Source: Podarcis vaucheri
Lineage: Eukaryota
Length of the DNA stretch: 64,000 nt
Reading direction: 5' to 3' (one strand)
Assembly: GCA_965113315.1 (NCBI GenBank)
Contig: OZ220367.1
The notes below the pieces were generated by a model. The model saw only the letters and a list, made by a program, of their open reading frames with translations. It ran no database searches and was not told the origin of the DNA. Below are positions 1-59,098 of this stretch, piece after piece (position 1 is the stretch's first letter; each line of letters begins with the position of its first letter). The position numbers and the translations under genes were made by a program.

Positions 1-2619
1 ACTGGCATATTTTTGTTTCCAAAATTCAGACTATTCCTGCAGTAAAGATGGGTAGAAGATCAGAATTTCATCCAGCAATTGAGAGCACAGATTGTTGCCA
101 AAGTAGGTCAGTTTACTTGAACACTAATTGGTCAGAACTTCCCAGGAAGCAAGTGCACCCCATGTTATTTAGTTGAAAGGTAGAGCTGTTGCCAGTTTTT
201 GTGCATTTGTTCTTGTGCATCTGGGAAACAACCTGCCCAGACAACCCTCCTGAAAAGAGTCTAAGGCTGTGGGAGAGGAATCAATAGGTTTCCAATCCCT
301 CTCCTAAAACAAAGTTTGGGAAGGGAAGAAAAGAATACTATGCTTCAAGGTGTTAAGTGCAATGTTTAGGTAAAAGGAAGAATGTCCTTACTCCCCCACC
401 CCAAAAAAATCATGGGGTGCCACCATGTTTAGTTAGGGCAATAGGGCAGACCGCACAATTTCAAAAGCAACTTACACCGCCACATTGGATCTGTGACGGA
501 CCGAAGGTTTGAGAGAGAGGTGAATTAGTAAAGGACTGTGTGTAGTAAATGCATATGGGGAATATATCGGCGAAAGAACTGTACTCCAACTTGACAGATC
601 TTTAACACCTATATATAAACCACAATTCCCAAGATTCTGTGGCATTCTAATGTCACATTGAGAACAAAACTCTGGATGGGGACAGGCAAAGGGAAGGAGG
701 GGTAGCTTTAGTTCTCAAAAGACTTTCATTGTATTTTGTGAGACAAACTAAATGGTCTACAGTCTGGAACACCATCAAGAATAGATAGGCAACAGCAGGC
801 TTAGCTCTCATGCCACTATTGGGCCCCAAGTAGTTCCCTTTAATTTCTCCTATATAAGTAAATATTGGATGTTCATTGAGAAGGAGGGAAATAAAACATT
901 AAGACTTCTAGCCAGCTTTGCAGTGCAGGCAAAACCTTTCACCCCTGACAATAATAACCTAGTGTCTACTGATAAAGAATTGTGGGTGACACTGGGTTGC
1001 AATATACAGCTGCTGCCTACGTACAAGAGAACACAGTATAATGATGAACATTCTGCAAGTAATTCATAATTTGCAAAGTGTCTATTAGGGACAGACAGAA
1101 GAAACTGTAGGAAGCTGGGATAAGTAATATTGTTATGCAGAAACATTATGCCTCTATGCAGCTACACTATGGAAAATGTGATACCCGGCAGAGGCAAGTC
1201 TTTTTGACCCTATAACGGTGTACAACTGACCATGTCTAATCAGGAGTAGGTCCTATTGAATTCAACAGGGCTGACTCTCAGGGAGTAATCTTAGGACTGC
1301 AGCCTTAGTTTCTCAGAGGAAGCAATTCCCCTCCTCTCACAATGGACTAGTCGATTAAAAGTCCACTTATGATGGCCCATAGAATTTAAAGAGAGTTGTT
1401 GAAAATGAAGCCTTTTTCTGTCCACATAGCCTTGCCCTTGGTTGTGTTTGTTGCTGATGGAAAGTGTGTGACAAAGGAGGATCCCAAAAACTTGCAAATA
1501 TGTAATGACTTGAGAACTCAGCAAACACCACAGCTGAGGTAGTTAAGAGTGCATATTAATAGGAATATGAGATTAGAAGGAAAGTGCTGTAAATGAATCA
1601 TTGTGAGTGAAATATAGGATGGTGGAAAGGTTGTTTATAAAAAGTACAGGCATCACTAATATGGCCTTCTAACCAGCAGCTGCCGAAAACCATAGATCTA
1701 CTTCTTTGACTGACTTGGGGGAGACCAGACTATGTAGAAAGGCCCTATAACACTGATTTCAAATCAGTGCCTAGTGGCAGCATTGTGCTACACATAAGCC
1801 AAATGCAAAAGGGATTAACCTTTTATCCAGACATGTACTGTGTTGCTCAAGACTTTTGTCTTGCCCATATAAAGGCTCTTAGCAATTACAATTACAATAT
1901 TTCACAGTGTCTGTGGTTAGATTCAGATATTCATTTTTGAAAGAATGTAGCAAACACAAGTTCACACATTATTTTCATATGGTGTTAATTTCTTCTGAAC
2001 ATGCTCCCATGTGGCAGGCCTGAGATTTAGCATACCTCGGATAAAATGAAAACATACTGTATCTAGTAATAATACCTCACTACACTGAAAAGAGCATTCG
2101 GAAGAACCACAAGGAAGTGAAAGGTAAAAGACACCTTGTGGTGACATTTCTCATTTGGTACAATTTATTTTTAAATCTTGCATCCCAGTTCTATATAGGA
2201 GCTTCAAAAGAGCTAAGAATAAAAAAGATAAAACAATTCAATTTAATCAATTTATGTAAAAAGTTAACTCAACTACTAAAACTGATACAATAACAGTTTA
2301 GATGAATCGAAACCATAATAGCGGAGTATGTCATTGGATAGTGCTATGTTGCTAGATAATAAACCTACACATCAGCTAATCATTAAAAGGTGGCCAAAGG
2401 AGGGAACTGAAAATGTGGCTGAGAGGTAGTTACTGCATGACAAGAGTACATTTTTACATTCATGAGCATCTGCTCTGCTACTCAAATACAAAACACAGCT
2501 TTATTTGTATATATAAACATATATCGACCCACCCTGGTACTCCACTGAAAGAAAGCAACACAAGGAAACAGAACCATAGATATTTTAAAAAGACACTTTA
2601 GAAACCAGCGCTTTGAACC

Positions 2620-5600
2620 ATTCAAGTTTTCACAACAAAATTTATTAGAAGAATAGTGGTTCTGAAAAGTCTAGCATCCAGTGAAAACTACCATACACGT
2701 TACAGCTGGGAATGTGTTTTCAAAATGACATGGCCAAAGAATACAACAGGGCTGTTAAACCCTTACACATGCACAACGAGAGAATCAGCGCTTTTGACAT
2801 ACAATGCAAAAAAAAAGTGGACCACGTGAATTAAAAATTTATAAGTACTTATCACATACATTAAGACACAGCTTATTTAGTCCAGTCAAAAAATCAGAAC
2901 TGCATTAAAAATTAAATGTAGTGCAATCAAACCAAAACCTTAATTTGTGATCATAAGTGCTCTACTACATAAAATGTTGATCATAGCAAGGAACAAAAAA
3001 GTTCAAATCACACAGTACAAAAAAAATCTGTAAATAAATACAAACTACAGTACAAGAGAAATATTAAATTATACAATTCCGTCAAACTGTAAACAGTATA
3101 TTGAAATGAGGTCCATAGATTAAAAAGGGGGTTCCTGCTTTATTTTTCCATGACACTTGTACTTTTAGAGGTCTGTGAAAAATGCCATTTTTCCATACTC
3201 TACATAAATAGAACTTTCTAAGGTGTAAAGCATCAAATAATAAAGCAGAGGCATTGCTGACGCACAGTTACGGTGAAATTAATGCTGGTGCGAGCAGCAG
3301 GCTTTATTTTAATGTGTTACACACATGCTCAGCAAACAGACCCACCACTACAGGCGTGAAATGCCAACACACTCACAATTAGTGCGCGGCACAAGAGGTG
3401 GCACGCCCGACAAGGAGCATAAAGGTAGGCGCAATCATGTGCTCCCACAATCTATGTGCTGCTGCTGATTATTTGAAAGTTTTACACTCTTGCCATAAAA
3501 CACCAACTTTGGCAGAAGGGTTACTAATAAACTCAAGCCCATCTAGCCCATTGGCTTCCATCACAGTGGCCAGTGCACAGAATTCCTAGAGACATTGCAT
3601 AACTAGAATGTAGAGGTCAGACACCCAAGGGCCAGGGCTCAAGTTTAGAAGTACCTGGGATGAAGGAGAAACCACAGCCGTACTGAGAAGCTGCCCCTGT
3701 TCCATTTACAGGGACAGCCAGGAATGTATTTGACATTAGCTGTGCTGGCTTGGTAGTGGCATTTTTAAATATATACGTTTAAGATTACATATATAATATA
3801 TATGTATATAACATAATACACATACTATATATAGAAATTTCTTACAATACATAATTATCAGGAACCCCCATGCGATCTTGCTCAGTAGTAATAACTGAAT
3901 ATACAGAATGCCACTACGTGTCTGAGGCACTGCGTGCTGGAGAGTAATATGCAGCTTTAAAATCCGTTTGGCTGAGTTATACCTGGATACCTGAACTGAG
4001 TTTAAGTTGACATTCATCAAGGATGTGCTATTAGCACATCAAAAGAAAAGCAAAAACAAAATACAAGTCACTGCTAGGTTTAAGAATAGTGTACAAGTAC
4101 CTGAATTGAGTGAGGGTAGTGTGTAAACTGTCCCTGAGGGTTTTCAAACAGTGTGTGTACAAGCTGGAATCCTAAGCACGTTAGTTTATAACTTACACTG
4201 CGGACTGATAAAATACCAACATTTGACAATTTAACAAGTGGAGGTTAGAAAGAGTTATGAGCAAACACTCAAAACATATTTATACATGTTTAAGCAGCAG
4301 TAAGCTGCTGTAAGCAAAAATCCCATGGATATAACCACCCAATGGGACTCTGAGAGGCTGCAGTCTGTAATCTGTTTTTCTGATGCTAGGGCATATGACA
4401 GCCGCCATCTACCCTCTCTCAACAAGTAAAGAAGTTTCACCTGCTAATGTAGAATGCACCTAGTTACAGACTAGCAATTCAAGATTAGATTTTTAATCAA
4501 AGACTTTCCTATTACATACTAAAATCCCTTAAGATCACTAATGCTGGTATGCTAATCTAGTTAGTTTTTTTTTAATTTCCCCCTTCATTTAAGAAATATA
4601 CCATTCGACAACTTAAACATTAAGATCCATTTTCAGTCCTCTGATGTAAAAAGCATGTCAGTGAATTTATATTAAAAATTTACATGGTAAAAAGGCTTGA
4701 ATTTCAGCCAAAGATTCTAAATACTGCTCATTCCCTGAAGACAAAAGGGAGAGAGAATCCCTACCCATTTTCCTAGTGATATACTTTCAAACTGAGCACT
4801 ACACAATGGTCTAAAACTATTCTTCATTTGGGAAACTTTACCTAGCCTCCCCCATTTAGATCCCAAACCTTAAAGCCCTGAAATGGTCTACTGAAATGTT
4901 TAATTAAAATATCATGCGAGTACACCCAGAAGCTGCCTGAACATTATAAAATTCCTGGACTGAAACTTTTACAGTACCTTAGACTCTGAAGACCAGATAA
5001 ATTAAGACTCTAGTTGTAACAGTAAAAGTGCTGAAAGGTCCCTTTTCTGTCTTTTTTTTAAAAAAAACAACAACAGGTCAGACAAGTGCTTTAATGGTCT
5101 ATCTATCTTTCTATCAAGTCTGTAAAGGTCTGATGAGTGTAGCACCAAATGTGAGGTACATTAGAGGCTGAAGTGGCATGTCCACAATTTTAGAGTGGGA
5201 GAGGAAATACGTAAGTCAGATTTTTATAAACTAGCGACCAAAGACGCAATGTATTTATTGTATAGAGAGATGGAACATCTAATCTTCTAAGGATCTTTTT
5301 TTAAAAAACCTTTGTATTAATAAAAACGGATTGTGCAATCAGGTTAATAATTTGAGAATTTTATAATGAATGTTTTCAGGCCATTACCTAATTGCAGGTA
5401 ATTTTGCAGGCTTGAAAATATTACTGACTTATACAAACTGACTAAATCAAATCTAGATATCTGTCAGAAAGATGCTGCAGTGGCCAACAACTTGAGTTTT
5501 TATTTCTCTGGAATTTTGAGTGCATCTGTGGATTATTTTAGGTGCCTACATAGATTCATCCACAAATTTGCAAAAAGTAACATTACAATACTTGTTACAT

Positions 5601-8600
5601 CCAAATAAACTGCATCTGCATAATTTTAGACTTCAACAAAAGCTTGCTCACTTGCAAAATTTCAGTTTATGACTAGATATTCTATGGTGTATTTCCAAGG
5701 AAGTTGCCAAGTTCTACATTTGAGAACTCCATAAGGCTAAAGAGCCAAAAGACGCACATCTCCAAATCCTTCCCTCTCTTCCAAGCCCTAGATCAGGCCC
5801 AGACCCTGGTCAGTCTGCAGCTCCTTCCTTCTGCCTATCAGCCCACGATGTCAGAGGCCCAAATATCTACAACTGCATTCTTCTCTTTGTCTCCTTTGAA
5901 CCTAATGCGAAGCTGCAAGCTTTTGATGGAAGGAGTGAACAGAAAATCTCTATCTCTAGTACACCAAATTCTCCATCAGTGATTTTCTGTTCACAATCTT
6001 GAACTGCCCAGATTTGGCCAACCCTGGTATATATCACGACAATTTAATAAACTGTTCACTTATCAAAAAAACTTGGAAAGCACAGATATAATGACCACAT
6101 TTGGGCATAATGTTAAACTATGGTTTAGTATTATGCGAATGAGCCTCACCTCCTGCCGGGCTCATGTATTTCCTCTCCTCATTCCTGCTGCACAGCAGGG
6201 AAGAATTTAAAAGCTTTGGTTTGCTTTTAGTTAAGTAGGGTGTGCTGCTTCATCCTAACTGGGGATTGTTGTCTAACACTAACTTTGGCTAACATCACGA
6301 AGCCAGGTACTTAACTCATGGTTTGAAAGTGGCTTATTTTTAAAATAACCAGTCTGTGTTGAACCACAAACCCTAGCTTGAATGAAACATACCACAGTTA
6401 ACTAAAACCAAAAGCAAATGTTTCTGAGCTCCTTCTGTAGAAAGTGTGGAGAGAAGGAGAGAACATGCGAATTTAGAAGGAGACTAGACTTGTTAAAATG
6501 GTGCTAAATCACAGTGTTTTAAAATTCAACTATGAAAGCCATTAGACACCCATGTGTTATAAAAGCCAACTGCAAAATGTGTAATTTGCAGACAGCAGGG
6601 AAGTTGATTTTTTTAATTACATTTCTGAAACTGCAAGGGAGAAATGCAAAAGATGCCTGATCCACAAAGAATGGACACCCTATAACTTCCTAGAAGCACC
6701 TATTTTTTTGCCTGAAAACATATGGAAAAAATTATTTTTATGTCAAGTTTATCTTTTCAAGACTGCCCAAGTCCTTCAAGCAGCCTTGGCTAATATGTGA
6801 ACCATCCCACTATGGGGCTGAAAGCTAGACTTTTAAAAGTTTCTGTTTTAGAGTTCTAGCAAAGTGCTTTTGGATAAGAAAGGGGGATGCTAGGAATGCT
6901 TCCCCAACCCACTCAGGTGCCATGCCTTTATCCTCTTTATCACCTCTGAGACACTCAGAGACTTTAGGAAGATTTCATCCTAAATTTATTATACATGGAG
7001 GGTGGAATCTGCTTTTCCCTGTCAACACCTCAATGAAATTTGACTCCCTTTCCATTTTTTTGGCTTGCTAAGGCGCTTACCATGAGACATCAATAGCATG
7101 ATGTCAATGAGATCACAAATACAGCCAATGTGTGGAGGTTTTCATGGGAAAACATTTTTTTTAAAAAAAAAATGCATAAATAATTCCTGACAGTTTCTGA
7201 GCAATCATGGTGTCATCTGAGATCATAGTTCAAACTGCCTCATCATTTGTCAATATGCTTTGGGATAAGCCACAGGAAACAAAGCAGACCTGAACTACTA
7301 CCATGTTTATAAGGTACATCTCATTCTTAAAGGATAATGAAAATTTATTCCAGATTTGCATTAGAAAATATTTAAGAAAACATTCAGACTAGGCCTTTCC
7401 TTTGGAGGCAGAGCAGCAGGCAGTATGGAGCAGTCCTAGGGCCATACAGAAGCAAGGGCATATTCTTGGGGCATTTGGCTAATGCAAGAAGAGGATCTTC
7501 GTGCCCCTGGAGGAGGTATCTTTCAATTCTTTTAATAAACTCAGGAGTTTGGAGATTATATATATATATATCTATATATATATATCTATATATAAAGTAA
7601 GGGCAACAGTCCAAACCCTACAACTTCCATTCTTTATAGCTGTAGTGAAAACAAAAAGGCCTGGGGCACAGAAAATGAGGTTCTAGAATGGCTGACAGAG
7701 GTAATAGTGTATCAGATCGCCAGGAAAGAGCTTTTATATTTTACAGATCCAAGTAAAAACTGATACATTTTCTACACACTGGGCTCGCTCCACAGAACTG
7801 CACAATAATTAACTCCACACTTGTACCCCTACAACACTAAGCCTTACTCATCTGTATAACCTGCTGTAGCAAAAGGTCACCAAGCAACATCTAAATTCCA
7901 GTACAATAGTGAACTTGATTTTAAACGTTACACAAACACACTCTAACATTAGTCTTCTAGGCTGGGAGTAGAGGGAGAACCTATCCTTCATGATACCTGG
8001 TCTGTATAAGCAGAGGCTGCCACAAATACTGTTCACAGTTTCATTCTGTCATTCAGGTGCACATGACACCATCAACAGATACACAATAATTCCACCAAAT
8101 TTTGGTTCTGGATCTAACACACATGTGATCAAAATGTCCAGTTCTTCCTCCCAAAGACTTCACCATTTCTGGAGCATTGCACCTGGCTTGTCCCCTTAAT
8201 ATGCTCTCAAAAACGACAGGGAAAACAAGGCCTAAGCCCTATGTCTTGCGCAAGTTACATGAGCATCCATTTACTGGAAAACAGGAGAAAACAAGGCTTC
8301 TCTTACAAAGACAGCAGCGAACCACATCTTCCCACATCAAACTATGGTCAGTTGAGGATTTTGGCCATGCAAACTTCTGTTCAGCAGAAAATTAAGCATG
8401 CTAATGGATAAACACTGATTTCATTTTTTCCTAACAGCAAAGATGCTTCCAAATGCTACTCAAAGCTGCACCAAAGGCGTCTGTCAGAGCAGTCTTACTT
8501 CAGTGAATCACTTAGGATCTAGAGTGAGATACAGTCACAGGATGAGCCACCTGGGCAAAAACAGGTGAGATGAAGTCTTAAACAAAAGTTAAACATTAAA

Positions 8601-11443
8601 AAGGTGCACCTGAATATTACAGACTAAGTTTACAAAACCTACAATAAGGTAAAATATAGATATATTTATATCTTTTGAATATTCAGCAGCTTTTTGTTTA
8701 TTTTTGAGAGGCTTCTGAAATTTTAGAAAGGGACAACTAACTAATTTCAACCATGCTTCACAAAACAATAATGGCTATTTTATATTGCAATTACGAAAGT
8801 AATGCAATTAGTGCTTTAAAAATAACCTACTTTTTCCTTTTCTTTTTTTAAGCAGAGACCTTTTGAGGAAATATGGTTGTTCCAAAGCTTCTGGGATTTT
8901 TTTTTTACCTGAATAGGAAGTGATCACAGATATTAAGTGTTATATTTCAAAGCTTTGCAGATAGGAATCTTACAATCGTCAGGTCCCAGGACTTTTATCT
9001 GAGAAAATTAAGTGTTTGGTTGTTTAATTCATTTTCTAACCAAAGCAATAAGAATACGCAACTATCACTATCTATTTACAGTTCTCAACCTATGGTCTGA
9101 AATGACGTACAAGTAGTTCTCTTTCTAAACTGCAGCATTAAAGGGTAGGCACACCATTTTTCTGCTGCACGATTGTCATCCACTTAATGATACACATAGA
9201 AAATATTTAGGTAAGTAAAATGAGCACTCCACATACACTATGACAAGGTTTTACGGAACTCAACTCATACATCACTTAAATAAAAACAGCCACAAAAGGT
9301 TAAACCTCTGACAGTAAAACTCTATGCAAGTGTTACACTTCTAGCTTGCAGCAAATCTTCTCCCACACTTTCAATAGCAGATGAAACCACAAATTTAAAA
9401 CAGTGCATTTTTATTGCAATTTCCAGAAAAACTGGAGTATATTGCAGAGTTTCTACACCACTATGGAGCTTCAAACAGGTTTCTGTACTGAGATGACACC
9501 TAGATAGCTAAAGGAACTCTGCTTTTGAGTATGGAAACACATTAAGCTACCAAAACAAAAAGAAAAGTCTAAGAACAGTAGTACAAAGCATATCTGGGCC
9601 AAAAGCCCAGTCTCTCTCAAGAATGAGAAGTGCATATTTAACACGACAGCAATGGTGTGCCTAACCTTTGAATACAGTGGGTTACTGGGAAGCAATCAAC
9701 CAATCAAGAAGGCCAACTCAATTAATTGCCCCCAAATTCAAGCAGCAGCCCTGGGGCTATCTAGGCCTTCTTCCTATGAATCTTAGCATCCACTTTCAGT
9801 CATTAACACAGGATAACTAATTAAGAACAGTGCTCAAATGATGTCTCACATACAAATTCCATTGCCTCTTTTGGTTGTGCAAAGCAGTAGAGTGGAGTCT
9901 TACCAATCTTTTGCACAGCTAAGATTAAATTGTTTCTCTACCCAAAGAACCATTAAGTCTGATTCAGTGAAGCTGCAAGTCCAGAAAGCTTTATTTAAAG
10001 CTTAACATGTAAGAATGTTCAGATGCCTCTGCAACTAACAAGACTGAACTGTGGATTTAGGAGTGCTAGTGGTGATCTGCCTATGCGAGTGTGTGCTAGT
10101 CCCCTATTAAAATCAATAGTGGATGAAATAAAAACAGAAATTCAGGATATGCAAGCACATTTCCTGCTACTGGCAACTGTAGTATTTAAAAAGGAAACAC
10201 CCATTGGGTGTTCAACCCTGACAGTGTTACAACTAGATAAGATGCTCAGCCTAAGTCAGACCAGAGTGATCTGATAATGGGTTTTATTAAAATTTGTAAA
10301 AATTTCTTCCCTGAACATTAACATAGATCCTTCATTTACATGACTATTTAGGCAGACTATTGAGGTTGTATGTTTAGAGATCAGTTGGTTTGATGAGGAT
10401 TTTTGTTTGTTTTTTGCCCAAGATTACAGTAAGCTGTTATATGTATTCCTGACTCCCAGAAGAGAGTTCTTTAAACGAGATGTTGGAAACGCACAGTTTA
10501 GCAAACTCAGAATCCAGTCTGTTAAAAAGCACGTAGGTCACAAAAAAGCCATTATTTTGTTAAAGTGAGGAATACCCTAGTATATCATTCAATGTACCCT
10601 GATGCTCCTGAATGGAGTGTTGAGATAAGGCTACATCCTCAAGCAGGCAAGCTGAACTCTCTCGCCTTTGCAAAAGAGCAAACACAATTACAGTGAAGGT
10701 AGTGTTCCAAAGGAATGAACCAAAGCATTCTGAAGGTAGTGTATGTAAAGTTCCCCCATCCCACTCCCACCCGCCCCGCCGGGTGAGCACTAAGCAGATT
10801 GCAAATAGTAAAGGAGGAGTTGAATTTAAAACAAAATGGCTCCGATTAGACCCAATTGACTAGGAATCCAATCACTAATCACTGAATTCAAAATGACTAG
10901 CCATACTTAAAAAGGTTAAAACTCTCTTTCAAGCCAACTGGATCGAAGAAGAAAAAAACTGTGAAAGCCTAATTATAAGCAATTATCCAGTTTTTGTTTC
11001 ACAAGTCTGGTACTAGAGCTCAAGAAAGTGATTTTTTTAAAAAGGCCATATGAAGAAAGCAAACCCAATAAAATAACTGAAAGTCCATGCAGGCTCAAGA
11101 GGCAAACAGTCCACTTCCATGTCTGCATTCTTTGTGAGGTAACTCAATTCTCTATAGAATATTAGAGAAACATGCAAAAGGCCAAAAAAAAAAAATATCC
11201 CCCAACAACAAAACAAAACAAAAACACAAAAGAGGGCTCTAAGCCATTCCGGGCCAGAAAATTTACAAATATGCAACATTCAGAGCACCCTTTTCCCCCT
11301 GTGTCCACACAAGTCTTTGCTGAACTGCAAAGGAGCATGTCCTGCACCCAGTGACTGAAGAGGAGTTGGGTACATACAGCAGGAGTTGAACAATGCCATA
11401 GTGCTCACCCAGTTTATAATGTAATTGGCACTCTACAACATCC
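2620..11443 (-). other. LCOR: LCOR long 3' UTR (~8.8 kb)
   Basis: Continuous from the stop codon; poor in young TEs; dense miRNA seed matches near the distal end; ends at a candidate poly(A) signal. The exact end is inferred. Confidence 0.65.
2641..2646 (-). terminator. Candidate distal polyadenylation signal of LCOR
   Basis: AATAAA on the minus strand (plus TTTATT), followed on the minus strand by GU/U-rich sequence (ctgtttccttgtgttgctttctttc). Confidence 0.6.
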
Positions 11444-12413
11444 CTAATCATCCTTTGACTCATTCGCACTCTGTGCTGCCTCTCCCTGGGGATCTATCTC
11501 AAGCTTTACAGAGACATCCTGTCCCTCCGGCCGCATTAATTTCATTTTTTTCTTTGGAGGGTTTTTCAAAGTGCCCAGCCTCTCTTTCACTTTATATTCC
11601 AGGGTGCTATGGGGAATCCCATAAATACTCTGAGCTTTGGAGACGCTCATTTTCCCACTCATCACCACAGAGATCGCTTCTTCCAATATCTCACTGTTGT
11701 ACTGTCTGTATCTGCCTCTTTTCTTCCGAGGTTGCTTAGAGCCAGGATCTCCCTCTTGATCAGAGGTGGGATATGGCTGTCCAGAGGTAGATTGCTCAGC
11801 ATCTGAGCCCCAGGAGTCTGGTCCAGGATCCAGCAAGCTCCTTCTGTTTTGTTTCGGAAGGATAGCCCTTAACTTTTTACTAAGCGCGCTCTCCGTTTGT
11901 GAACCCATCACCAAAGAGCTATAGCTATACTGGTCGCCAGAACGTGACTCCCATGAAAGGTCCATGCCTCGAACTTGTGGTATCTTTAAATCCACAGGAG
12001 TTGAATGGCTCATGTCCTTTTTCCCATCCTGTTTAGTTTGAAGTGCCATTTTTTGAAAGGCTGAATTTTCTGTAAGAAAAGGAAGGTCACTGATGTTGCT
12101 GAGTGCACCGTTTCCCCTGAATTTCATTCGGGTGAAGTTGAATTCGTAGTGTGGTTTTGCCCAAGAAGCCTCCCTGGATAGTATCATGTGCTGTCCATGA
12201 TTCTGCAGCCCAGACGGCCCATGGCTGGCAGCTGTAGCATGCTGGTTTCTGCTCAGCAGTTCTTCGCTTATCTGCAGTGATCGAGCCAATGGAACTTTGA
12301 GAGATGTGGAGTGGCCAGACCCTTCCCTCGTTCCATCCTGCCAACTTCTCGGGGGCACCCCATCACCACTCCGAAGTCCCTCTGCATGGTGCTGGCTGGG
12401 TCTCCCAGGTCGC
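11444..12413 (-). CDS. LCOR: LCOR last coding exon (NLS RKKRGR and pipsqueak-type HTH domain)
   Basis: Acceptor ccaattag| at 12414/12413; RPGRPSQ...RKKRGRYRQYNSEILEEAISVVMSGKMSVSKAQSIYGIPHSTLEYKVKER...SKDD*; from ATG 20191 the spliced CDS is 238+94+970=1302 nt = 433 aa, the same length as human LCOR. Confidence 0.98.
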
Positions 12414-13517
12414 CTAATTGGATGGAAGGAAACTGATGTGAGCAGGACTTGCACAGGTAGGGAGGAATGGGTGAGGGGGCCACTCCTTTATTAGAAGACC
12501 TTGCTTGGGTAACATCACTTTTGTGGGTTTTTATTTTTATTTTTTTAAGTCTCAGCAGTCAGTTTTTTAAAAAATTGTTCAAAAATAAAGAGAAGCTTTT
12601 TGGGCAAAGAAAAACGAAACCTGTCAGCTGGTCTTTGGTTGGGTTCACAAAATCTTGGAGCAGAAAAGGCTTCGCGCAAGTGTCTGAAAATAGCATCTTA
12701 ATTATAGATTAGAAAGGAATAATCATTTGCTAGAGTCTATTCACGACTGTATTACTAGTGTGACGTTACCACTAAACAAGTACAGTAATAAAAGAGTAAG
12801 CCAAGTGACAAAATGCAGCAAATTCAACACGCATACTCTCACACACCAGCCACCTGCACTTTTTATAAAATGCTGAAAGCTCTGGAGGGCATGGATTAAC
12901 ACTATATATGCTAAAGTTGCTGCTCAGCATCAAGAGCGCTCAGCAGAACTCAAAGGTGTTTGCTTATTTTGCATTAAACATTAGAACAGAAAAACGGAAT
13001 GGTTCTCAAATAAAAATGTTGCACAAATTCAGACTCCATTTCCTTTTAAAATTAATCATAAGTCACATAAATATCAATTTGATTCTGTTTTTCACATGCC
13101 TAGGTAAAGAAGCAGGATATTTTCTTGCCACATATGTATTATTTATTACGCTCTTTCCAACTTTACTGATTAAACAGATCCAGGTTAAATCTATTTTTTA
13201 AAAAGAGTATGATATACAGTCTAATCAGACTATCAATCTTGTTTTATGCACACAATTATTTCAATTCCTGTAAATAATATGAACAAAAAGTATGCAATGC
13301 ATTCTTGGTACTTTGCTCATTAAGATGATTACTGTGTATATCCTATCTAGCAAACAGCCTTTATATATTCACAGACCCCTTTAACCTAGCCATCTGAGAT
13401 ATGTATTTTAGGACCCACCTTACTCTCTTTACTGTAATTTGTATTTCAATATTGTATTTTTACATTTTTGTAACCTGCCCTAGGACCTCATGATGAAGGG
13501 CAGGTAAGAAATCTAAT

Positions 13518-13554
13518 CAACAACAACAATAACAACGACGACAACAACAACAAC
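13518..13554. repeat. Imperfect (AAC)n microsatellite at the end of a short plus-strand LINE/SINE 3' remnant (~13420-13517)
   Basis: caacaacaacaataacaacgacgacaacaacaacaac preceded by tgtaacctgccctagg...gaagggcagg. Confidence 0.75.
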
Positions 13555-13817
13555 GTACAGAAGATTTGGATGCATAGCAAGGCAGAAGGAAGAACTTACA
13601 TTCAAGTTTGGACTTCCTAATTCTTTAGCCTATTAAACATTGCTCAGAATTTGAAGATTCTTAATTTGGTAACGAACAGTCCACATGAATTCTGAACAAG
13701 AACCACCCCAGTGTCAAGGGAAATAATAAATTTCTACCAGAACTTTAAACATGCATTGAATATTTCAGCTAGTTCTAAAACAGTGAAGCACTGTCCAGAT
13801 ATAAAGATTAACTAGCG

Positions 13818-13953
13818 CAGGCTTCTTCAAACTCGGCCCTCCAGATGTTTTGAGACTACAATTCCCATCATCCCTGAACACTGGTCCTGCTAGCCAGGGA
13901 TCATGGGAGTTGTAGGCCAAAAACATCTGGAGGACAGAGTTTGAGGAAGCCTG
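13818..13953. mobile_element. Palindromic hAT MITE
   Basis: TIRs CAGGCTTCTTCAAACTC/GAGTTTGAGGAAGCCTG; 8-bp TSD AACTAGCG/AACTAGCA; internal inverted symmetry (ccagatgtt...actacaattcccat / atgggagttgtag...aacatctgg). Confidence 0.85.
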
Positions 13954-15425
13954 AACTAGCACTTTGAGAGACAAAGGGCAATAGTTAACTGGCATTTAAC
14001 TTAACAGTACAAAGCAGAAACACATGCTGATCTCTTGAAGATGCTTTCAGTCAGCCATGTAGGAACACTTTTTTGTTTTAAATGCACAGAACCTGTTAGA
14101 ATATTCAGAAAGGGAACAGAAATTGATAATTCTCCTTCACAAGACAGTATTTAGAGTTCTGACATACAGGGTTAAGTAATATATCCATGTTGTGAGGAAT
14201 TTAAATGTCTCTTTTGCAGTTATAAGTCAGTGACTGTCAACAATGGTTATTTTTATATCACTAGAAGTCCAGCAACTTGAAGATTATGTAATTCCACATC
14301 TATATTCAGCCGCTTAATATTCTAAAGGCTGATTAGCTTTAAAAATATACAAAAAAATGTATTCTATCGCAGCATTTTAAAGTATCACCCCAAATTTCTT
14401 TATTCTCATGTATCTTCTCCCTATCAGCACATGCAACAAAAAATACAAAGTTGATGGGATTGTATAACCTTCACCAAAAAAAATTTGCACCCAGAAACTG
14501 TCTACTAGTCTAATAATAGTATAGTATTTGGAATGTTTGAATTATTGAGTATTCATCTTGGAAACAGCTCCAAGGTAAGTAACTACAAATCCGTCATATA
14601 TCTAATGAGCCATTAGAAAACAAATGGAATTATAGCACTGTACTATAATAGTAGGTTATACAAAAAAAAATCCTAACAAATATTTTACAATTCTTGCTCA
14701 ACCACTATCTTTACTTTAGTGGCCTTGCCTAGACATTATGACTACTAAAGGAAACACTGTTTGGTTTGCTGATCTATTCAAACTAGGCAGCCATCATCCC
14801 ATCCTATCAAAGGCTGAGATCGGGTTCAGATACTTATCAAGCCTCATGTGATCACCTGTGGGATGTGCATGGAACTACCAATGGTTCACAACCCAACAAA
14901 GATCATGTGCAGCCACTGGTTGTATGACCTGATACCCCCATACATGAAGCCACTGAAACTGCATTGTGATAAAACTTTCTGACTCGCTACAATCATGAAA
15001 ACTGCAGTAGTCATTTGTATAAGCTTCAAGGGGAAATGGTTGTTCATACAACTGGCACCCAACATAACCCCTGCCAAGTTGTTAGCCCCCTCATAGGCCC
15101 AATGCTCCCATAGTCAAATGCACAGGTGTGGCTGAGCATGTGAACAAAGTCAAAATAGTCAACTTTTTAAAAGGTTGAAAGATCATAGCTCTACATTTCA
15201 CATATCAGGTACAAAACCAAAGTATTCCTGAAATGGAATTAATTTTTCAGTTGACTTCATATTTAAGGATTGGAAGAAGGTGTTTTAACAAGATGTAATT
15301 ATACTCTGAAGGGTTAAATCAACCCTGTCTGTGGAAGCAATAAGGAAGAATTTGACCCTCAGTTTGTTGTTATGCAAATAACTTGAGGGGGGTTTTAGCT
15401 TAAAAATACTAATAATTTCCCTTAC

Positions 15426-15519
15426 CCATTCCCAGGAGTAGCGGAGCAGCCAGGTGAATGGCTCAAGGAGGCGCTGCCTGCACATGGACTTTTCTTAGTG
15501 GACAGATCAAGTACTCCGT
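15426..15519 (-). CDS. LCOR: LCOR coding exon 6 (second CtBP motif VLDLS)
   Basis: Acceptor tctctgcag|, donor GG|gtaagg; 94 nt; encodes (D)GVLDLSTKKSPCAGSASLSHSPGCSATPGNG. Confidence 0.96.
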
Positions 15520-16209
15520 CTGCAGAGACATGAGAATTACTTGAGAATAGGAAGAAATTAATAAAACTAAACACACACAAACATACAACTTGGTAAGTTT
15601 TTATGGCTGAAACGCTGTCTCAGTTAATCTTGGGTTGCTTTGGAACTTCCTACTGAACCTCAACCAAAGTCTCTTGACACATCAGCCATTATTTTATTTT
15701 CTTTATTTTGTTTTGTTAAGGACATATTGATATTATGACTTTCATTCAATAAAATATTAATGGTAGATTAAACAGTATGAACACATTATATCTGAGAGCA
15801 TAGAATGCAAGTTAATTTCAAAACATAGTTCTCTGCATATACTTCATAATGTCTGAAAAGTGGATCAAGTTACTTCTTTTTGAGCATGTATACTTCTTGT
15901 TATCCACCATACATTCATTAAGATGTAGTCAATGTACTGATAGTTTCAAGTAAGACACAAAGGAGAACAGGAAAGAAAAAAACATCTTAACAAGCAGAAC
16001 CGAAGTTCATGTACCCATAAAAGAAAACTCAACAAGTGTTTAATTCAGGTACTACAAATAGGAGCAAGAGTGGAGAATTTATTGCCTTACAATTATTACT
16101 GCAAACAAACTGCAGCTTTCATATTAAGTATTTTCTTGGTACACTTCATTTTATTTAATATATTTATATTCCATCTTTAAATTTAGCAAAAACAATACAA
16201 TTTAATGGG

Positions 16210-16338
16210 ATAGCTTACAGGGCACTCTCCAGATGCTATAGACTACAACTTCTATTATCCCTGACCACTGGCCATGTTGGCTGGGGTAATGAAAGTTGTA
16301 CCCCACAATATCTGGAGTGCACCACTTTGGCTACCACT
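16210..16338. mobile_element. Degenerate palindromic MITE related to the 13818 element
   Basis: ctccagatg..gactacaac...ccctgaccactggcc...gttgta...atctggag, the same layout as 13818-13953. Confidence 0.6.
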
Positions 16339-18574
16339 AATCTTGCTTTTTAAAAAGTGCTGCAGTCCAGATATTCAGTCCATGAGCTATTCAGTTAGAA
16401 CAGAGATAACTAGTTCAGCAATGCTAGCCTTGCATGTTCCAAGGCAGTAAAGAAGATGCTAGAAAGTCATGTGACTGGATTTTTAAAAAGTCATGTAATA
16501 ATATATTTTGCATTTATAAGATAATTGTTAGCCATTAGTGGAAGACTAACTAGTAAGCTTGATGAAACCATTTTTTCTACACAAAGACTACTTACTGCCT
16601 ATCTCCCATGAAGCTTAAGTATAAACATTCTTAAAAGCTGCACAATTCTGGAAGGTAACAAGCTACTTGTTATTACTAACAACTTTTAAGAGGTAGTCAG
16701 TGGGAAAGAGGAAGGGTAAGTGGTGGCAAGTGTAGTTACCAGACAATTTGCCAACGTGTACATTTACAGATGCCCGCATCCTACAAGCAGGATAGATTCT
16801 CTCTTCTTTTTCTTAATAAGCTGGGTAGATTCTCAATGAATTATTGCTGTGTTTCATATAACACCTAAACTCTCAAGGGATCCAACTCCATTCCCAGCAT
16901 ATGGAGTATACAGCAACTTCTAATGCACACAGGAACTCACTTTTTAGCAACTGCAGCTCAGTGAAACAGTGTCTCCTTTTCTAGCAAAAAAGTAACAAGC
17001 TATGGTTGTACAGACCACCTTTAAGACTCTTATCCAGAACTTTATTATGAATCTAAATCTTTCTGTTCTCTCCTCCATCAAAACAGTTTTGGAACTGTTT
17101 CAAGTCTGTTTGTAACTACATTATTAGTACAGTTAAGGAGGTTTGTTAATATTTGCTGTCCATGCATTTATATGGTAAAATGTACTATTTGGCTCACAGA
17201 AATGGAAAAGTTCATAATTATTCAAAGCGATGTTATTTAAAGCAAACCTAAATTTCAAGATCATCTATACTGTTTAACAATAAAGAATATTTAGTTTTTC
17301 AACATGTATTTTTGCAATTTAAGGGGCCAGAGTAAGGTCTGAAAAAGGTCTACTTATTATTAGAGAGATGGGGCAGTACTTCGTTACACCTTGTCCAATT
17401 AAATACTTATTTGGTTCTGCGAGAAAACCAACTAGAAGACCCATGTTATACTTCCAAGGTAGAGATTCACAATCCTTTTCACTATCACTTTTCATCTGTG
17501 TCTGGTGTAGGTGAAGTTTTACACATATGAAATAACATGCAGAAGTGGAGAATAGCCAGCTATGCATGCTTACAAGGATTTGAGGCTTACAGTAGCTAAC
17601 GAAATTACGTGTGACTCAACAACATCAACCTGTGACAAAGATTAATTCTAATTTGCATTACATTAAGACTTAAGTAATAACAGTATTTGTCGGTTAGACA
17701 TTCTTTCTAGTGGGTCAAGTTTTTGGTTCAATATCTTAAGAAAGTGTTTAAAAGCTAGTGGATTCTGTATATATGTGGAACTCTCTCTGGTAAATTATAT
17801 GAGGAAATGCTACAGGAATAGGTATATGTAGCCTTGAGACCAGAAAGGCAAGTGGGCAAACAAATTATGTTTTCAAGAAATACCAGAATGGAAAGAATGA
17901 ATGGTTTTTTCAGCTTTCTATGAAAACAAAGCAGTTACAGGTTTAAAGTGGGAATTTGATGCACACTCCCTTAGGAGAAAGCACAATTGAACACAGTGGG
18001 ATTTTATTTAGTAAACATGTATCAGATTGCACTGTAGATTACCTAACTGTAATGATTTAGAAAATGGACAAGTTGCTTAAGCTGTATGTGAAAATTTCTT
18101 AAAGTCTTTAAGAAAGCTAAAAAGAAAATGCTAGACAATAATATTTTAAAGTGCTTTATTTTCTAACACATATGTATTGACTTTTCAGCAAAGTCCAAGT
18201 GGCATACAAAATAATCCAACTTTAGGGCAGACAACTGCTTTCAATAGCTTATGGATTTCTCTTGTCTCTAGAATGCATTAAAATAAACATACATTATAAT
18301 GTAAGATGAAGGGCAAAATTCTTCAGGTCCATTAAAAGTACTGTGTATATGTTCACTTCCAAGGGAAAAGAACAAAATATGCAACTGCTTCAACCTTGCA
18401 TTTGCTCTTTCAAAAGCACTTGGTCAACACCAAGGTTTTCTTTTAACATAAGCACCACAATCAGAGGTTGACAAATGCAGTTACCATATCTTAAGATGCT
18501 GGCAACCACCTGCTACCTCCAGCATAAGATGAGAAAGGTGGGGCTCATCTCTGATGATGTTCGGGACTTTGGAA

Positions 18575-32723: not shown

Positions 32724-33132
32724 CTGTGAAGAAGAAGATGCCGTTACTTCATATCTATAAAGACCACAACTTGCTTATGGCTAAAGCTCATTCCCAATTC
32801 ACTACATGATTTAGAAGACACTTGGTGAAATTCAGAAAACACAAATTTGATTTTTGTCATGCTTTTAATTCCACAATGTTACAAAAGTATAATATTTGCC
32901 TACACACAAAGCTGATTTTCCTAAGCAACACCAAAACCACTGCCAGTTATACAGAGATGAAGGCATGCTCATTAGTAATTTTAGCCAATATGAAACTAAC
33001 TGTGAGCATTGCCTGGGGGGAGGGAAAAAGCACAAATCACCAAGGTAACATACATTTTCTAGAGGCAGAGCAGAGGTTGATTTTGTCATTAGAAATGCAG
33101 ATCAAGGCAAAAAAGGGGGGGAGATGTAATAC

Positions 33133-33198
33133 CTTTAAACAAACTCAGATCTTTTAATAATTCAGGTCCAAACAGCCCTTCTAGAATACTTTCAAATC
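33133..33198 (-). CDS. LCOR: LCOR coding exon 2
   Basis: Acceptor ctttgcttttag|, donor G|gtatta; 66 nt; encodes (G)FESILEGLFGPELLKDLSLFK in frame with exon 1; matches the LCORL motif GFESILEGLYGP. Confidence 0.92.
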
Positions 33199-33530
33199 CT
33201 AAAAGCAAAGAAAGAATAGTTAGCTTTCTCTATAGTATATGTTACTGTCAGAATATTGAAAATGGTTCTTTATTCATCCGTTCCTAGCATTCTTTTATGC
33301 AATGAACTCAAGGCCTCCTGGTCAATCATGACAAATAAACTGGGGGAGGAGAAATGAGCCTTTATGTATATTATCTTTAACAGTTACACTAAATAACTAT
33401 ATTAATAATTAAGAAGTATATGGTAGAAAAAAGGGAAATGATTGTGTATCAATGCAATTAATTTTTCCACAAAAATCTACCACTCTTTTTAGGTTATAAA
33501 AAATATGTCTTTTTGCCTCATCTTATAGAT

Positions 33531-34050
33531 CAGTGTTTCCCAAACGTTTTTGGGCAACGGCACACCTGTTTACCGGAAAAAAATCTCGCGGCACACCACC
33601 ATTAAAGCCCCGCCCCGTGACGTCAGCGCGCAGCGTCACGCCGGGAGGGACGCACAAAAGTGAACGTTTTTTCCCTTCCCCTTGCCGGGGTGGGAGGAGG
33701 CAGCAGAGCGAGGGACTGAGGGACGGCGGCAGCTGAGGCGGCGGCGGCTGTTGTGGTGGTGGCGGCGATAGCGGGCGGAGGAGGAGCCGTCGCCGGGAGT
33801 TGCTGCTGCTGCTGTTGCTGCTGCTGCCCGGACATGCCGGCCTCCTCCTCCTCCGCTGTCTCGCGCTCCTCCCTTTTGCGCGCGCTGCCCCGCCGCTCGG
33901 CACCACCACCGCGGAGCCGCCCCCGACTTGACGCGGATCCTCGCCGCCGCCGCCTCTCGCCGCCCGACTCGCCCGCCTCCCTACCACGGCACACCAGCCG
34001 GTGTCTCACGGCACACTAGTGTGCCGCGGAACACCGGTTGGGAAACACTG
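33531..34050. mobile_element. Non-autonomous hAT (Charlie-like) element carrying a captured GC-rich gene fragment
   Basis: TIRs CAGTGTTTCCCAA/TTGGGAAACACTG; perfect 8-bp TSD TTATAGAT (33523-33530 and 34051-34058); repeated subterminal CGGCACAC motifs at both ends; interior of CpG-island character. Confidence 0.93.
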
Positions 34051-35545
34051 TTATAGATCACATTTTTAAGCAAAGATTTTGAACTTGAAGCCTTAGAATT
34101 TCTTAGAAAAAGGAAAGCCACTAAGGTGCAAAGGAAACAGCAAAATACAGTGTGCATGCATTGTGTATGAGCTTGTTTATTACAGAGAAGATTTTCTATG
34201 CCTTTTTAAAGAGTGCAGAGTGTTTGTGTTCTAAAAGATTCTACCACCACCACCCAATTATTGCCACTATTTGTAAATGTAAATTCAGTGTTAATCTAAA
34301 TCATGGCTTGCAGCTAAAGAGATAGCCAAACTAGCTACCCGTTACCCATACCATAAGGAAAGGGGCACATTCTAGAAAATATACCAGGGACATTTTAGGA
34401 GACATTTGTTAATTCTGCCAGAGTTTGCTCTGAAAAATAAGACACATTTTTGGGATTTTATAGTACAATCTCCACATATACTTAACAGTATTGTACTTGT
34501 ATAATTTCTACTTTTCCTACAATATTTGAAGTCAAGAAAGAAAATGTTTTTTTTCAAGAAAGCCTTGGAAAAAAGCAATGCAACAGCTATTTTTGGAGCC
34601 ACAATAGAGTGCAATATAGGGCAATTGCTTTAGAGATGCATGACTCTCTCTCTCTCTCCAACAAGCTTCACAACCCAGTGGTTGTACTTTCATTTATAAA
34701 GTATACACAAGAACCATATTGCAAATTTGGATGTGTTACAGTCATTAGCTATCAGATGTAAAACTTAAAACACACTTCTATCATTTAACGTTAGTAAGAG
34801 GTTAAAATTGCTACTGTGGATTGAAACTGCTAACAGAAACATCTCTTGATCAATGTTGATCAGCTAACAACAAATCTATCAGGGTGAAGCACAAACACAG
34901 AAGAGACAAAAATACAGAGAAAAGAAGGAGGGAGTGTAATAAATATACATGTGTGTAATGCAATGAGCACACAATAAGCCAAAATACAATGGATGCAGCT
35001 GGACATCATTATCTTACAGTTACTCTGCTAACTTTTAAAAGTTACAAAGCAAAACTGACAGAAATATAAGTCACAGTCAAGTCTGGGGAAACATCATTAC
35101 TAAGAAAAAGTTAAAATTCTAAAATACTATTCTAAAAGACTTATGCACATGTTTGCAACAGAGAACCGTTTGCTTTATTATTATAAAAAATAAAAGCCAG
35201 AGAAGAATCTGTGAAATGCAGAAATGGCAAGCAGAGAAACGTCCCTTCCTGCAAATGGCAACTAATTATTTATTTTTAAAGAAAAAAGTGTTGGGGCACT
35301 CTTGCACATATGCATGTAACATGTAGATGTTATATAAATATTTGTAACTCAATAAACAAACAAGTCATGGCCTGTTTCTCCACCTGCTCTTGCCTCATGC
35401 CTTTGTAACTTGGTGAGTGAGGTGGGGTGGCAAAACAAAGCATTGTTAAGTGAGGATATAGAGTATGGACATAATATGAAAGCATAGCCCGAAAAGAAAC
35501 CATGGTTAGTCTCTTGGGTTGGGTCTGCAAGTTCAGCAAACCATA

Positions 35546-53731: not shown

Positions 53732-53952
53732 CAGTGTTTCTCAATCTTTTTTTAACTCATGCCCCCTTTTAGTAATATAAAAATCCCACTCTCCCCCTTC
53801 AAACCTGGCTCCTACATTGTTATTTTTTAATTGTCAAATGGATTGAAATTTTGTTTTTGTTTTTTTACTTACACTGTACATATTTTGGGAACACTTCTGT
53901 CCCCACTCAAGATCATCATATGCCTCCCTCCCGCCCTGGTTCACAAACACTG
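53732..53952. mobile_element. Older hAT-Charlie-like MITE
   Basis: Ends CAGTGTTTCTCAA ... TTCACAAACACTG; imperfect 8-bp TSD CTTTAAAT/ATTTAGAT. Confidence 0.6.
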
Positions 53953-54662
53953 ATTTAGATGTTTAAAAATCCCAGTTGGACTTTCACCATACTTCCTCCA
54001 AGACTTCTATTAAAAATGTTGTTACTGCAATATGGCCTAACCAAAGACCATGAACACAAGATAAAATTAACAGTTTTCTTATGGACTTATTGGCCCAGAT
54101 CAGACCAATTATAGCTGCCACACATAATCAACCTGTCTTCCATTGGAACTGGAACCTTGCCTCTGAAGCCACAGGTAGTTCTCTTTCCCAGTACTGTTAC
54201 CTGAGACAAAACCTAAAGTCCTGTATGCAAACCAAACCAATCCTCCCACCCACTAAAGTTTTATTTGGAATGGACTCATAAACTCAAATATTTTACTTCC
54301 CCAGAGAAAGATCAGGGGAAAATATCACCAATACTTATTGCACCCTGGAAGTTTATGAAGCTAAGACCTCATAAAACTGATCAATTTGAAGTTCAAACTG
54401 TTAGGTGCAATGCTATCAAGATAAAATGCTACAAACACAATTATACTTTGGACCTTCTAAAATGTTTTTGTACTTTACCTCAAAAAATAATCTGGATAGC
54501 TAGGTGATTAACCTTCACAGCTTAGTCATTTCCTTCATATCTTCTGTTTACACAAAAGGGGGGAAAGTGCACCCACATAGATACCAAGACTACAGGGGTG
54601 GAGAGAGAAGCAAAAAGAATTGTTCCCCCTAGATGCTATGCTCATTTTTTCCAAATCGGCAA

Positions 54663-57890: not shown

Positions 57891-59098
57891 TTATGGTGCA
57901 TCCTTTTCACTCTCGGGCATCATTTCACCTCTATTTGGAAAGAAGCCTTGCAATGCTTCTGGCACCTCTCTGAGTATCTGAAGCTTGTAGATCTGCTGGT
58001 ATATCTTCTCCGCTATGTCTTCTGCCTTATCCGCCATTTTCTCATTGGCCTTCCCCAGGTGGGAAAACACTAGGAGGATCCCAGCCTCTCTTATCCTTAG
58101 CTCAGGATTATAAATGGCCCGCAAAGATGTCTCCAGAAAGGTTCTCTTCTGATCTTCTGTGAAGATGTTTCTGAACAGCTCACCCACCCTGCAGGAATCC
58201 ACGTAAGCCAGCATTTTCTGGTCTTCATAACTGTGGCACCACAGTTCTTCAGCCTCACTCACGCTCAGCCCCATCTGATCGAGCAGCAGCTCATAAAGGC
58301 AGCTGATAGTCAACCTGGCCTGATTGCTCACATCTTCCATCGTATCTGTGATACAGATTCCAAACTGTGCCACGTGGTGTCCCAAGGCAGGAAGCTCACT
58401 GGACTTGTTGAAGTCTGGCAGCAGAAGAGCATGTCGCAACACAGTGGTGCTGCAGAGGACAGACCTATACCTCTCTTGGGGATCGTTGGAATGAATCCAG
58501 AAGTTGATGTGCTTCTAAATAAACATCAGGTGGCTTGTAGTTGGAACCTCAGACAGTAAGCCCTTCAGCATGGCCTCCATTGTGTCTGCAGACGATTGGT
58601 AGAGAGCCTGGCTGTGAGGATTTTCCAAATCTGTATCCATGTTAAAAATGCCATGGAGAGCCAGCCGCAAGATACCAGACAATTGCTCAGGATCAAATGG
58701 GGGCTTCATTTTGCTGAGGTTGTAGACCGTGAACATTGAGCAGGTTTTGTGTTTTATATCAAGCACCTTTATAAAAAGCTGTAAAAGTCAGCATTCCTAG
58801 TAAAAACAAAAACCATGGTGTAAAAAGCTCTGCTGGATCATACCAAAGGCAAGCCTTCTACCCCAGCAGCCTGTTCTCCCAGATGTTGATGATAAGCTTG
58901 CAAATGGGACCTAAGTCCCACAGCATCCTCACCAGTTGCAATGCCCAGCAACTGGTACAAAGAGGCATGCTGCCTGTGCCAGTGTTGTTGGAGCATAACT
59001 GTCATGGCTAGGTGCAGGATGCCTCTGGAAATCACATCTCTCTTGGATATCACGGATGTCATGGTGTCTTCATCAGGTTTAGCAACAATGTCTTTCAT
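57891..59098 (-). pseudogene. MROH (maestro HEAT-like repeat)-like compact gene or retrocopy with one in-frame TAG
   Basis: ORFs 58515-58766 and 57891-58442 share a frame and are separated only by TAG at 58515-58517 (LMFI*KHINFWIHSNDPQERYRS). Motifs LSKMKPPF...MLKGLLSEVP...HINFWIHS..QER.RS..LRHA resemble sauropsid MROH2/MROH7-like proteins. The upstream ORF 58844-59098 joins in frame through a short GT-AG intron. Confidence 0.7.

Follow-up and report, generated by a model that had tools for sequence, protein, structure and literature searches.

A recent, unfixed hAT-type insertion in an LCOR intron of Podarcis vaucheri and the probable gene origin of its family's CpG-rich core

We describe a 520-bp element (33531-34050) that lies in an intron of LCOR within a 64,000-nucleotide stretch of the lizard Podarcis vaucheri (NCBI GenBank assembly GCA_965113315.1, contig OZ220367.1), hereafter called the window. 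Its structure is that of a non-autonomous hAT transposon, bounded by terminal inverted repeats (TIRs) and a target-site duplication (TSD). The insertion is very recent, derived and not fixed, and the depth of public contigs points to family copies numbering in the thousands, a figure that is rough. On balance, the element is best accounted for, and in our judgment is probably, a young and unfixed hAT insertion whose GC-rich core is the shared interior of an amplified family, probably with the 5′ fragment of a gene that was once captured. Any such capture would be a single older event in the founder of the family, and not an event in the copy described here.

Structure of the element, its empty sites and its family

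Every sequence feature listed in Table 1 was recovered at its coordinates in the window, which holds no N stretches. A preliminary description of this DNA had claimed a 520-bp unit with perfect 13-bp TIRs, a perfect 8-bp TSD and subterminal repeats, and all of these are present. Both TSD copies are perfect and each directly abuts its TIR. The 8-bp TSD and the short TIRs, which start with CAGTG at both ends in agreement with the terminal motif YARNG (as defined in PMC3014272), are the hallmarks of hAT elements. The target TTATAGAT fits nTnnnnAn (positions 2 and 4 are T, 5 and 7 are A, and 6 is G) and is close to the target NTCTAGAN of the Anolis hAT-HT3 families. The exact 13-mer of the TIR matches the window only twice, namely at the element's own ends; when up to two mismatches are allowed there are nine matches against 2.7 expected, a count reached by none of 100 shuffles. 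The motif CGGCACAC occurs four times directly (33558, 33589, 33987 and 34009) and once inverted (34019), which are all its occurrences in the window, and this count of five compares with 0.11, and at most three, in shuffles of the element. These motifs are presumed to be transposase-binding sites. The right arm also contains a palindrome with 24-nt arms (33994-34041). No transposase gene was found in the element with Pfam, and, as far as its sequence tells, this is a non-autonomous hAT-type element.

The composition of the element is sharply different from that of its surroundings. Over its whole length the GC content is 0.68 and the observed-to-expected ratio of CpG (CpG o/e) is 1.02, against a GC content of 0.34 and a CpG o/e of 0.06-0.14 in the flanks. 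The contrast is stronger still for the GC content of the core, in line with the earlier remark that a very GC- and CpG-rich interior sits within an AT-rich intron. The 520-bp element falls within the sequence definition of a CpG island (at least 200 bp, GC content of at least 0.5, CpG o/e of at least 0.6).

Table 1. Coordinates of the element's features and of the neighboring LCOR exon in the window (ORF, open reading frame; CRE, cyclic AMP response element; X1, X13 and X15, public sequencing runs described in the text)
Feature	Position	Strand	Basis
Left TSD copy, 8 bp, TTATAGAT	33523-33530	.	Sequence; one copy kept in X1 and X13 empty-site contigs
Left TIR, 13 bp, CAGTGTTTCCCAA; terminal motif YARNG = CAGTG	33531-33543	+	Sequence; motif definition from PMC3014272
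Left subterminal arm, CGGCACAC twice (33558-33565, 33589-33596)	33544-33611	+	Motif enrichment; subfamily breakpoint at 33612
GC-box at 33610 (CCGCCC); CRE-like palindrome TGACGTCA at 33618-33625	33604-33664	.	
70-codon ORF, MSGQ(Q)9LPATAPPPPA..., with stop codon (33625-33623)	33623-33835	-	Translation; MSGQ, nine Q, then LPATAPPPPAIAATTTT
GC/CpG-rich core ("cargo")	33665-33985	-	GC 0.735, CpG o/e 0.95; contig depth
Gene-start-like segment, 167 bp: 61-nt GC-rich leader, ATG at 33835 and 35 codons	33730-33896	-	Two contig breakpoints
Right subterminal arm, CGGCACAC at 33987 and 34009, inverted GTGTGCCG at 34019; canonical family end	33986-34037	.	
Right TIR, TTGGGAAACACTG (plus-strand letters), exact reverse complement of left TIR	34038-34050	-	
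Right TSD copy, 8 bp, TTATAGAT	34051-34058	.	Sequence
66-nt LCOR exon	33133-33198	-	AG/GT borders; exact match to spliced X15 contig

The presence or absence of the insertion was assessed with public contigs mapped onto 33031-34550. Three of the runs are DNA (X1, X6 and X13) and one is probably RNA (X15). X1 and X6 carry the same species label as the window, X6 being a second individual, and X13 comes from the sister species. The flanks in X1 show no mismatch in 992 bases, and those in X13 show five differences. One X1 contig (3,047 nt) joins 33522 to 34051, and the 528-bp skip is the sum of the element (520 bp) and a single TSD copy. An identical 528-bp skip, with a single TTATAGAT retained, was observed in one contig of X13, and one contig of X6 shows a 533-bp skip, that is, the empty site with an extra 5-bp deletion. 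Exactly one TTATAGAT at the junction indicates the state before insertion, and not the footprint of a hAT excision. The empty site in all three DNA runs therefore indicates that the insertion postdates the divergence of the two species and that, in the species of the window, it is either heterozygous or polymorphic. The preliminary description had called the insertion young and had proposed a search for the empty site in relatives or other individuals; both are borne out by the single-TSD site in X1 and X13, by the site lacking 5 bp more in X6, and by the closeness of this copy to the family majority. The extra deletion in X6 lies at 33520-33524 (ATCTT) and shows a 2-bp microhomology. Most simply it is an ordinary indel, less probably an old excision scar.

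The abundance of the family was estimated from the summed k-mer depth of the mapped contigs, to be read as orders of magnitude only. In X1 (flank depth 104), the summed depth is 0.93-1.14 million in the left arm, 0.50-0.74 million in the core and 1.24-2.09 million in the right arm, or approximately 9,000-11,000, 4,800-7,100 and 12,000-20,000 times the flank, respectively. The corresponding multiples are approximately 12,000-15,000, 2,900-5,700 and 11,000-17,000 in X6 (flank depth 23.1), and approximately 1,100-2,400, 85-760 and 4,700-10,000 in X13 (flank depth 93.8). The amplifying family suspected earlier is thus evident in a depth within the element that is thousands of times that of its flanks. 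The subfamily that bears the core is about 10 times commoner in this species than in the sister species, whereas the right end differs only about 2-fold. The depth is no lower in bins free of simple repeats (33643-33693 and 33847-33897) than in the others, so mis-mapping of low-complexity sequence does not explain the depth signal.

The individual contigs give a similar picture of the family. In X1, 4,233 contigs map on the element, including 1,351 that are alike at 99% or above, and the contigs that exit its right end lead into at least 28 distinct right flanks. The present copy differs from the family majority at three sites only (33665, 33926 and 33983). Family variants with internal deletions were observed, with joints at 33868/33912, 33908/33944 and 33972/34024. 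Other copies in X1 have internal deletions of 35-51 bp and indels in the GCC tract (+5 bp behind 33949, -9 bp at 33968). With a length of 520 bp, TIR and TSD boundaries, no match to a family or database and high depth, the element resembles a miniature inverted-repeat transposable element (MITE).

As the core is thousands-fold deeper than the flanks, the "cargo" is the standard interior of a hugely amplified family, and it keeps its CpGs because the copies are young. The preliminary description had instead proposed that this very copy captured its cargo, and had itself named as decisive against this the outcome now observed, namely a GC-rich interior that belongs to the family consensus. A fresh single-copy Pack-hAT, in which the individual element took up an exon at or near the locus, would agree with the perfect TIRs and TSD and the undecayed CpGs. 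The great depth of the core in the DNA data sets and its presence in the sister species argue strongly against such a private capture, as does the lack of anything alike elsewhere in the window, the CpG island of LCOR included, and we give this account almost no credence. Just as hard to believe is an element that is ancestral at this site, with the "empty" contigs produced by a precise deletion or an assembly artefact, which is conceivable on formal grounds. A de Bruijn contig crosses an empty junction only where reads do, and reads spanning that junction are accordingly required by the contigs observed; moreover, exactly one TSD copy stands at the junction in two species.

Origin of the GC-rich core

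The core reads like the beginning of a gene on the minus strand. The ATG at 33835-33833 has a purine at -3, and translation confirmed both this start and the ORF wording given in the preliminary description. The CAG run that follows is interrupted twice, each time by a synonymous CAA codon. Two contig breakpoints delimit the gene-start-like segment around the ATG. At 33730, four X13 contigs and one X15 contig follow the core and then diverge; past this point they read, in the minus sense, GG CCC ATG CCT GCC GGG AGC GGC GGC, which continues the ORF in frame as ...A-S-A-G-P-M-P-A-G-S-G-G. At 33896, contigs of X6 and X13 diverge upstream into other sequence with a CCAAT box. The two breakpoints indicate that the 167-bp piece exists in at least one other context. 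This may be the donor gene itself, or else a subfamily that had captured a longer piece.

The order of M-S-G-Q, a glutamine run, L and PPPPA agrees with the start of human RANBP9. The in-frame extension past 33730 likewise resembles a stretch of RANBP9, S-A-G-S-S-P-A-G-S-P-G-G. A gene origin of the core is likely in our view, and RANBP9 in particular, on the strength of this likeness, is a candidate donor that we hold to be probable with somewhat less assurance. The N-terminus of RanBPM is disordered and rich in proline and glutamine (PMC5493780).

The following course of events would account for these observations. The 13-bp ends and the CGGCACAC motifs would be recognized by a hAT transposase produced from another locus of the genome, and cut-and-paste transposition of the element would duplicate 8 bp of its target. 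The core would be a mosaic that probably includes a 5′ fragment of a host gene, with its leader, ATG and approximately 35 codons (33730-33896). This fragment would have been picked up once, in the founder of the family, by template switching during repair or replication, and RANBP9 would be the best candidate donor. The depth data show that the burst of the family was far stronger here than in the sister species, with copy numbers that are rough.

Several points weigh against this account. X1 may or may not be the assembled individual, so heterozygosity and population polymorphism are not separable; contig depth does not equal true copy number; and no autonomous partner was found in this genome. 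The remaining points concern the gene origin of the core, and would equally suit the alternative that the core derives from no gene but originated inside the family as filler or as GC-rich DNA of low complexity, its likeness to RANBP9 being a compositional coincidence of polyglutamine followed by proline and alanine runs. The ORF is of low complexity, and several frames are open in this GC-rich DNA on both strands. The breakpoint at 33730 is present in four contigs of X13 and may mark a multicopy subfamily rather than a single-copy donor, and the contig breakpoints in general could be mere marks of subfamilies. The segment with the GC-box and the CRE-like palindrome, both putative as functional motifs, is found downstream and not upstream of the minus-strand ORF, with the stop codon of this ORF located within the CRE, an arrangement ill-suited to a collinear capture from promoter to exon. 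Searches of the ORFs were also blank. The 70-codon ORF and its first 35 residues gave only chance matches among PDB chains (E >2), with no RANBP9; a 128-amino-acid (aa) ORF gave 1,065 candidates in a set of 5.8 billion proteins, none with E <=0.01; the ORF gave no usable match in the ESM atlas; and Pfam assigned no family to the element's two long minus-strand ORFs. These blanks are no evidence against RANBP9. The PDB result is uninformative because of low-complexity filters and because the constructs may lack the N-terminus, and the search of 5.8 billion proteins covered lengths of 70-224 aa, a range outside which full-length RANBP9 falls.

Against a core of no gene origin stands the order of the features, which goes beyond composition in its agreement with the start of human RANBP9. 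The variant contigs, furthermore, extend the ORF in frame into a stretch of Gly, Pro, Ala and Ser that also resembles RANBP9, and the CAG run has synonymous interruptions and the ATG a purine at -3. We consider a core without any gene source unlikely, while granting it a real chance. A genuine 5′ gene fragment from a donor other than RANBP9 would be equally compatible with the structural evidence for capture, RANBP9 being a candidate only; no other vertebrate protein is known to us to start with MSGQ, a glutamine run and then L..PPPPA, and we regard another donor as improbable.

The host locus and related hAT ends

The insertion lies in an AT-rich and CpG-depleted intron of LCOR, which is encoded on the minus strand. 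The host gene is recognized by its HTH_psq coding exon at 11444-12454 (Pfam E = 3.5e-15), which shares 92-95% identity with LCOR proteins of amniotes; the protein clusters recovered with it were broad amniote ones that listed no squamate. Relative to the direction of the gene, the element is located 332 nt upstream of the 66-nt LCOR exon, and its ORF has the same orientation as LCOR. The only donor-like sites of good quality are CAG/GTGTGC at 33565 and CCG/GTAAAC at 33573, both past the stop codon of the ORF. Because the ORF stops inside the element, ahead of any good splice donor, fusion of its start codon to LCOR is impossible for this copy. RNA-like contigs that touch the element enter from varied flanks (with loose ends at 33526), which indicates read-through rather than initiation of transcripts. 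No sign of exonization was observed at LCOR, and no function in LCOR is indicated. Given the internal stop of the ORF and the absence of the insertion from other individuals, this copy is best interpreted as a polymorphism of the intron, either neutral or mildly deleterious, and not as a functional part of LCOR.

Pieces of the element also occur in X15, which comes from a further species, at a summed depth of 700-7,000 compared with 17 for the LCOR exon. The family is abundant in transcripts, most likely as a passenger of introns or untranslated regions (UTRs). A GC-rich island at approximately 56.4-57.6 kb of the window is taken as the promoter and first exon of LCOR. Capture of the core from this island was considered and rejected, as a BLAST comparison of the element with the window gave only GC-rich matches of 13-21 nt. 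Just beyond the island, on the minus strand (57891-58442), a Maestro HEAT-repeat domain (PF21047, E = 8.5e-13) was recognized in a 183-aa ORF, which may be an exon of a neighboring MROH-type gene, or a fragment.

Related ends were sought in metagenome contigs by scanning for the TIR followed, after a gap of 10-17 bases, by GGCACAC. At least 120 loci (L001-L120) were recovered, most of them from a few JGI (Joint Genome Institute) samples of one eukaryote and without other similarity to the window. Their consensus end, CAGTGTTTCCCAAACTGTGTGCCGCGGCACACTGGTGTGCCGC..., is 90-93% identical to the lizard right end over approximately 46 nt, with a second GTGTGCCG motif at a similar spacing from GGCACAC, and the target logo is equally nTCTAGAn (119 related ends). 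At two of these loci, the related end is followed by a DUF4371 ORF of 582-647 aa (L016:5451-7591 and L095:5448-7589). The two ORFs are more than 99% identical and may be one site sampled twice; their relatives are "zinc finger MYM-type 1-like" hAT transposases with a hAT dimerization domain. In contrast to the lizard element, the MITEs of this unrelated host are AT-rich and have no GC-rich core (for example L001:1124-1341, 218 bp). The core matched none of the at least 120 loci, and the left lizard end is likewise not shared among them. An exact 27-mer of the right end had no match in the metagenome contigs, nor had a degenerate end pattern in viral contigs. These comparisons place the ends in a widespread hAT lineage whose transposase is of a known type, and suggest that the core is specific to the lizard family. 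The conserved ends in an unrelated host could result from horizontal transfer, as has been proposed for the Anolis hAT-HT families.

A second element with a related end was observed within the window (53732-53953; CAGTGTTTCTCAATC... to ...CAAACACTG). It is MITE-like, older and CpG-poor, and is flanked by imperfect 8-bp repeats. This element shows that insertion of hAT elements with such termini has been long-running in this lineage.

Comparison with known systems and significance

By its TIR, the nearest published lizard family is that of hAT-HT3_AC and hAT-HT3N1/N3_AC in Anolis carolinensis, with the TIR CAGTGRTTCCCAAA and the 8-bp TSD consensus NTCTAGAN (Novick et al. 2011, PMC3014272). The TIR CAGTGRTTCCCAAA agrees with CAGTGTTTCCCAA(A) at 13 of 14 positions, a likeness that refers to the TIR and target motif alone. 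The non-autonomous Anolis derivatives are 300-800 bp in length and present in hundreds of copies (PMC3014272). In contrast to the lizard family described here, those of Anolis are of greater age (2-6% from consensus) and have no reported core that resembles a gene.

The preliminary description had also stated that gene capture by such elements is barely described in vertebrates. This was overstated, since 370 Pack-TIRs are known from 100 animal genomes, of which 208 are hAT-associated and only four are multicopy (Tan et al. 2021, PMC8277862). They include Pack-hAT-N8_XT of the frog Xenopus tropicalis, which carries 291 bp of the CAPSL 5′UTR and has three copies (PMC8277862). The lizard element resembles it as a non-autonomous hAT with TIRs, an 8-bp TSD and an interior like the 5′ end of a gene, which would likewise have spread by transposition after capture. 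As in a Pack-TIR, it is bounded by TIRs and a TSD and holds no transposase gene. Unlike the three copies in the frog, the lizard core is present in the order of thousands and is still polymorphic, and the parental gene, by which a Pack-TIR is defined, is here a candidate only.

Amplification on a comparable scale is known from bats. HelibatN3 Helitrons of Myotis contain the NUBPL promoter together with six codons and a splice donor, and Myotis Helitrons have amplified the promoters of 15 genes to 4,690 copies (PMC4778049). As in HelibatN3, a vertebrate family has mass-amplified CpG-rich DNA that resembles the 5′ end of a gene (in the lizard, a candidate one) and dispersed it into introns. HelibatN3 is a rolling-circle element with a working splice donor and proven chimeric transcripts, whereas the lizard family is a cut-and-paste hAT; in the lizard copy, the first good donor lies beyond the end of the ORF, and no transcript was seen to start there. 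Within the incomplete coverage of the literature search, no relevant paper turned up on a lacertid family of hAT elements or MITEs or on the N-terminal string of RANBP9, and none that describes the present family. In plants, Pack-MULEs are TIR elements with gene fragments inside, frequently the GC-rich 5′ ends. They differ in belonging to another superfamily, with 9-11-bp TSDs and long TIRs, and each of their fragments is usually of low copy number. The lizard family behaves as an ordinary high-copy non-autonomous hAT, which would combine the structure of a Pack-hAT with amplification on the scale of Helibat if the capture were confirmed.

DNA transposons that are still mobile are uncommon in amniotes. 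Thousands of near-identical copies, together with an insertion that is absent from other individuals, indicate that the family is still active in this lizard lineage or was so until very recently. The insertion has no special implication for LCOR. If the core is the captured 5′ end of a gene, this would be by far the most amplified animal Pack-TIR known, as the published multicopy cases number only a few copies. The capture of RANBP9 would, if true, make the family the TIR-transposon counterpart of HelibatN3 and NUBPL in bats. The fullest form of the idea, namely that a currently active cut-and-paste hAT family of a lizard captured the promoter-proximal RANBP9 leader and first codons and amplified them to thousands in a burst specific to the lineage, seeding new CpG islands and alternative transcript starts or first exons genome-wide, appears doubtful at this stage and is, in our estimate, quite unlikely. 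Should the core be a captured 5′ end of a gene, the family would constitute a natural experiment in which thousands of CpG-island-like fragments have been placed across a vertebrate genome, with bearing on methylation, new promoters and chimeric transcripts.

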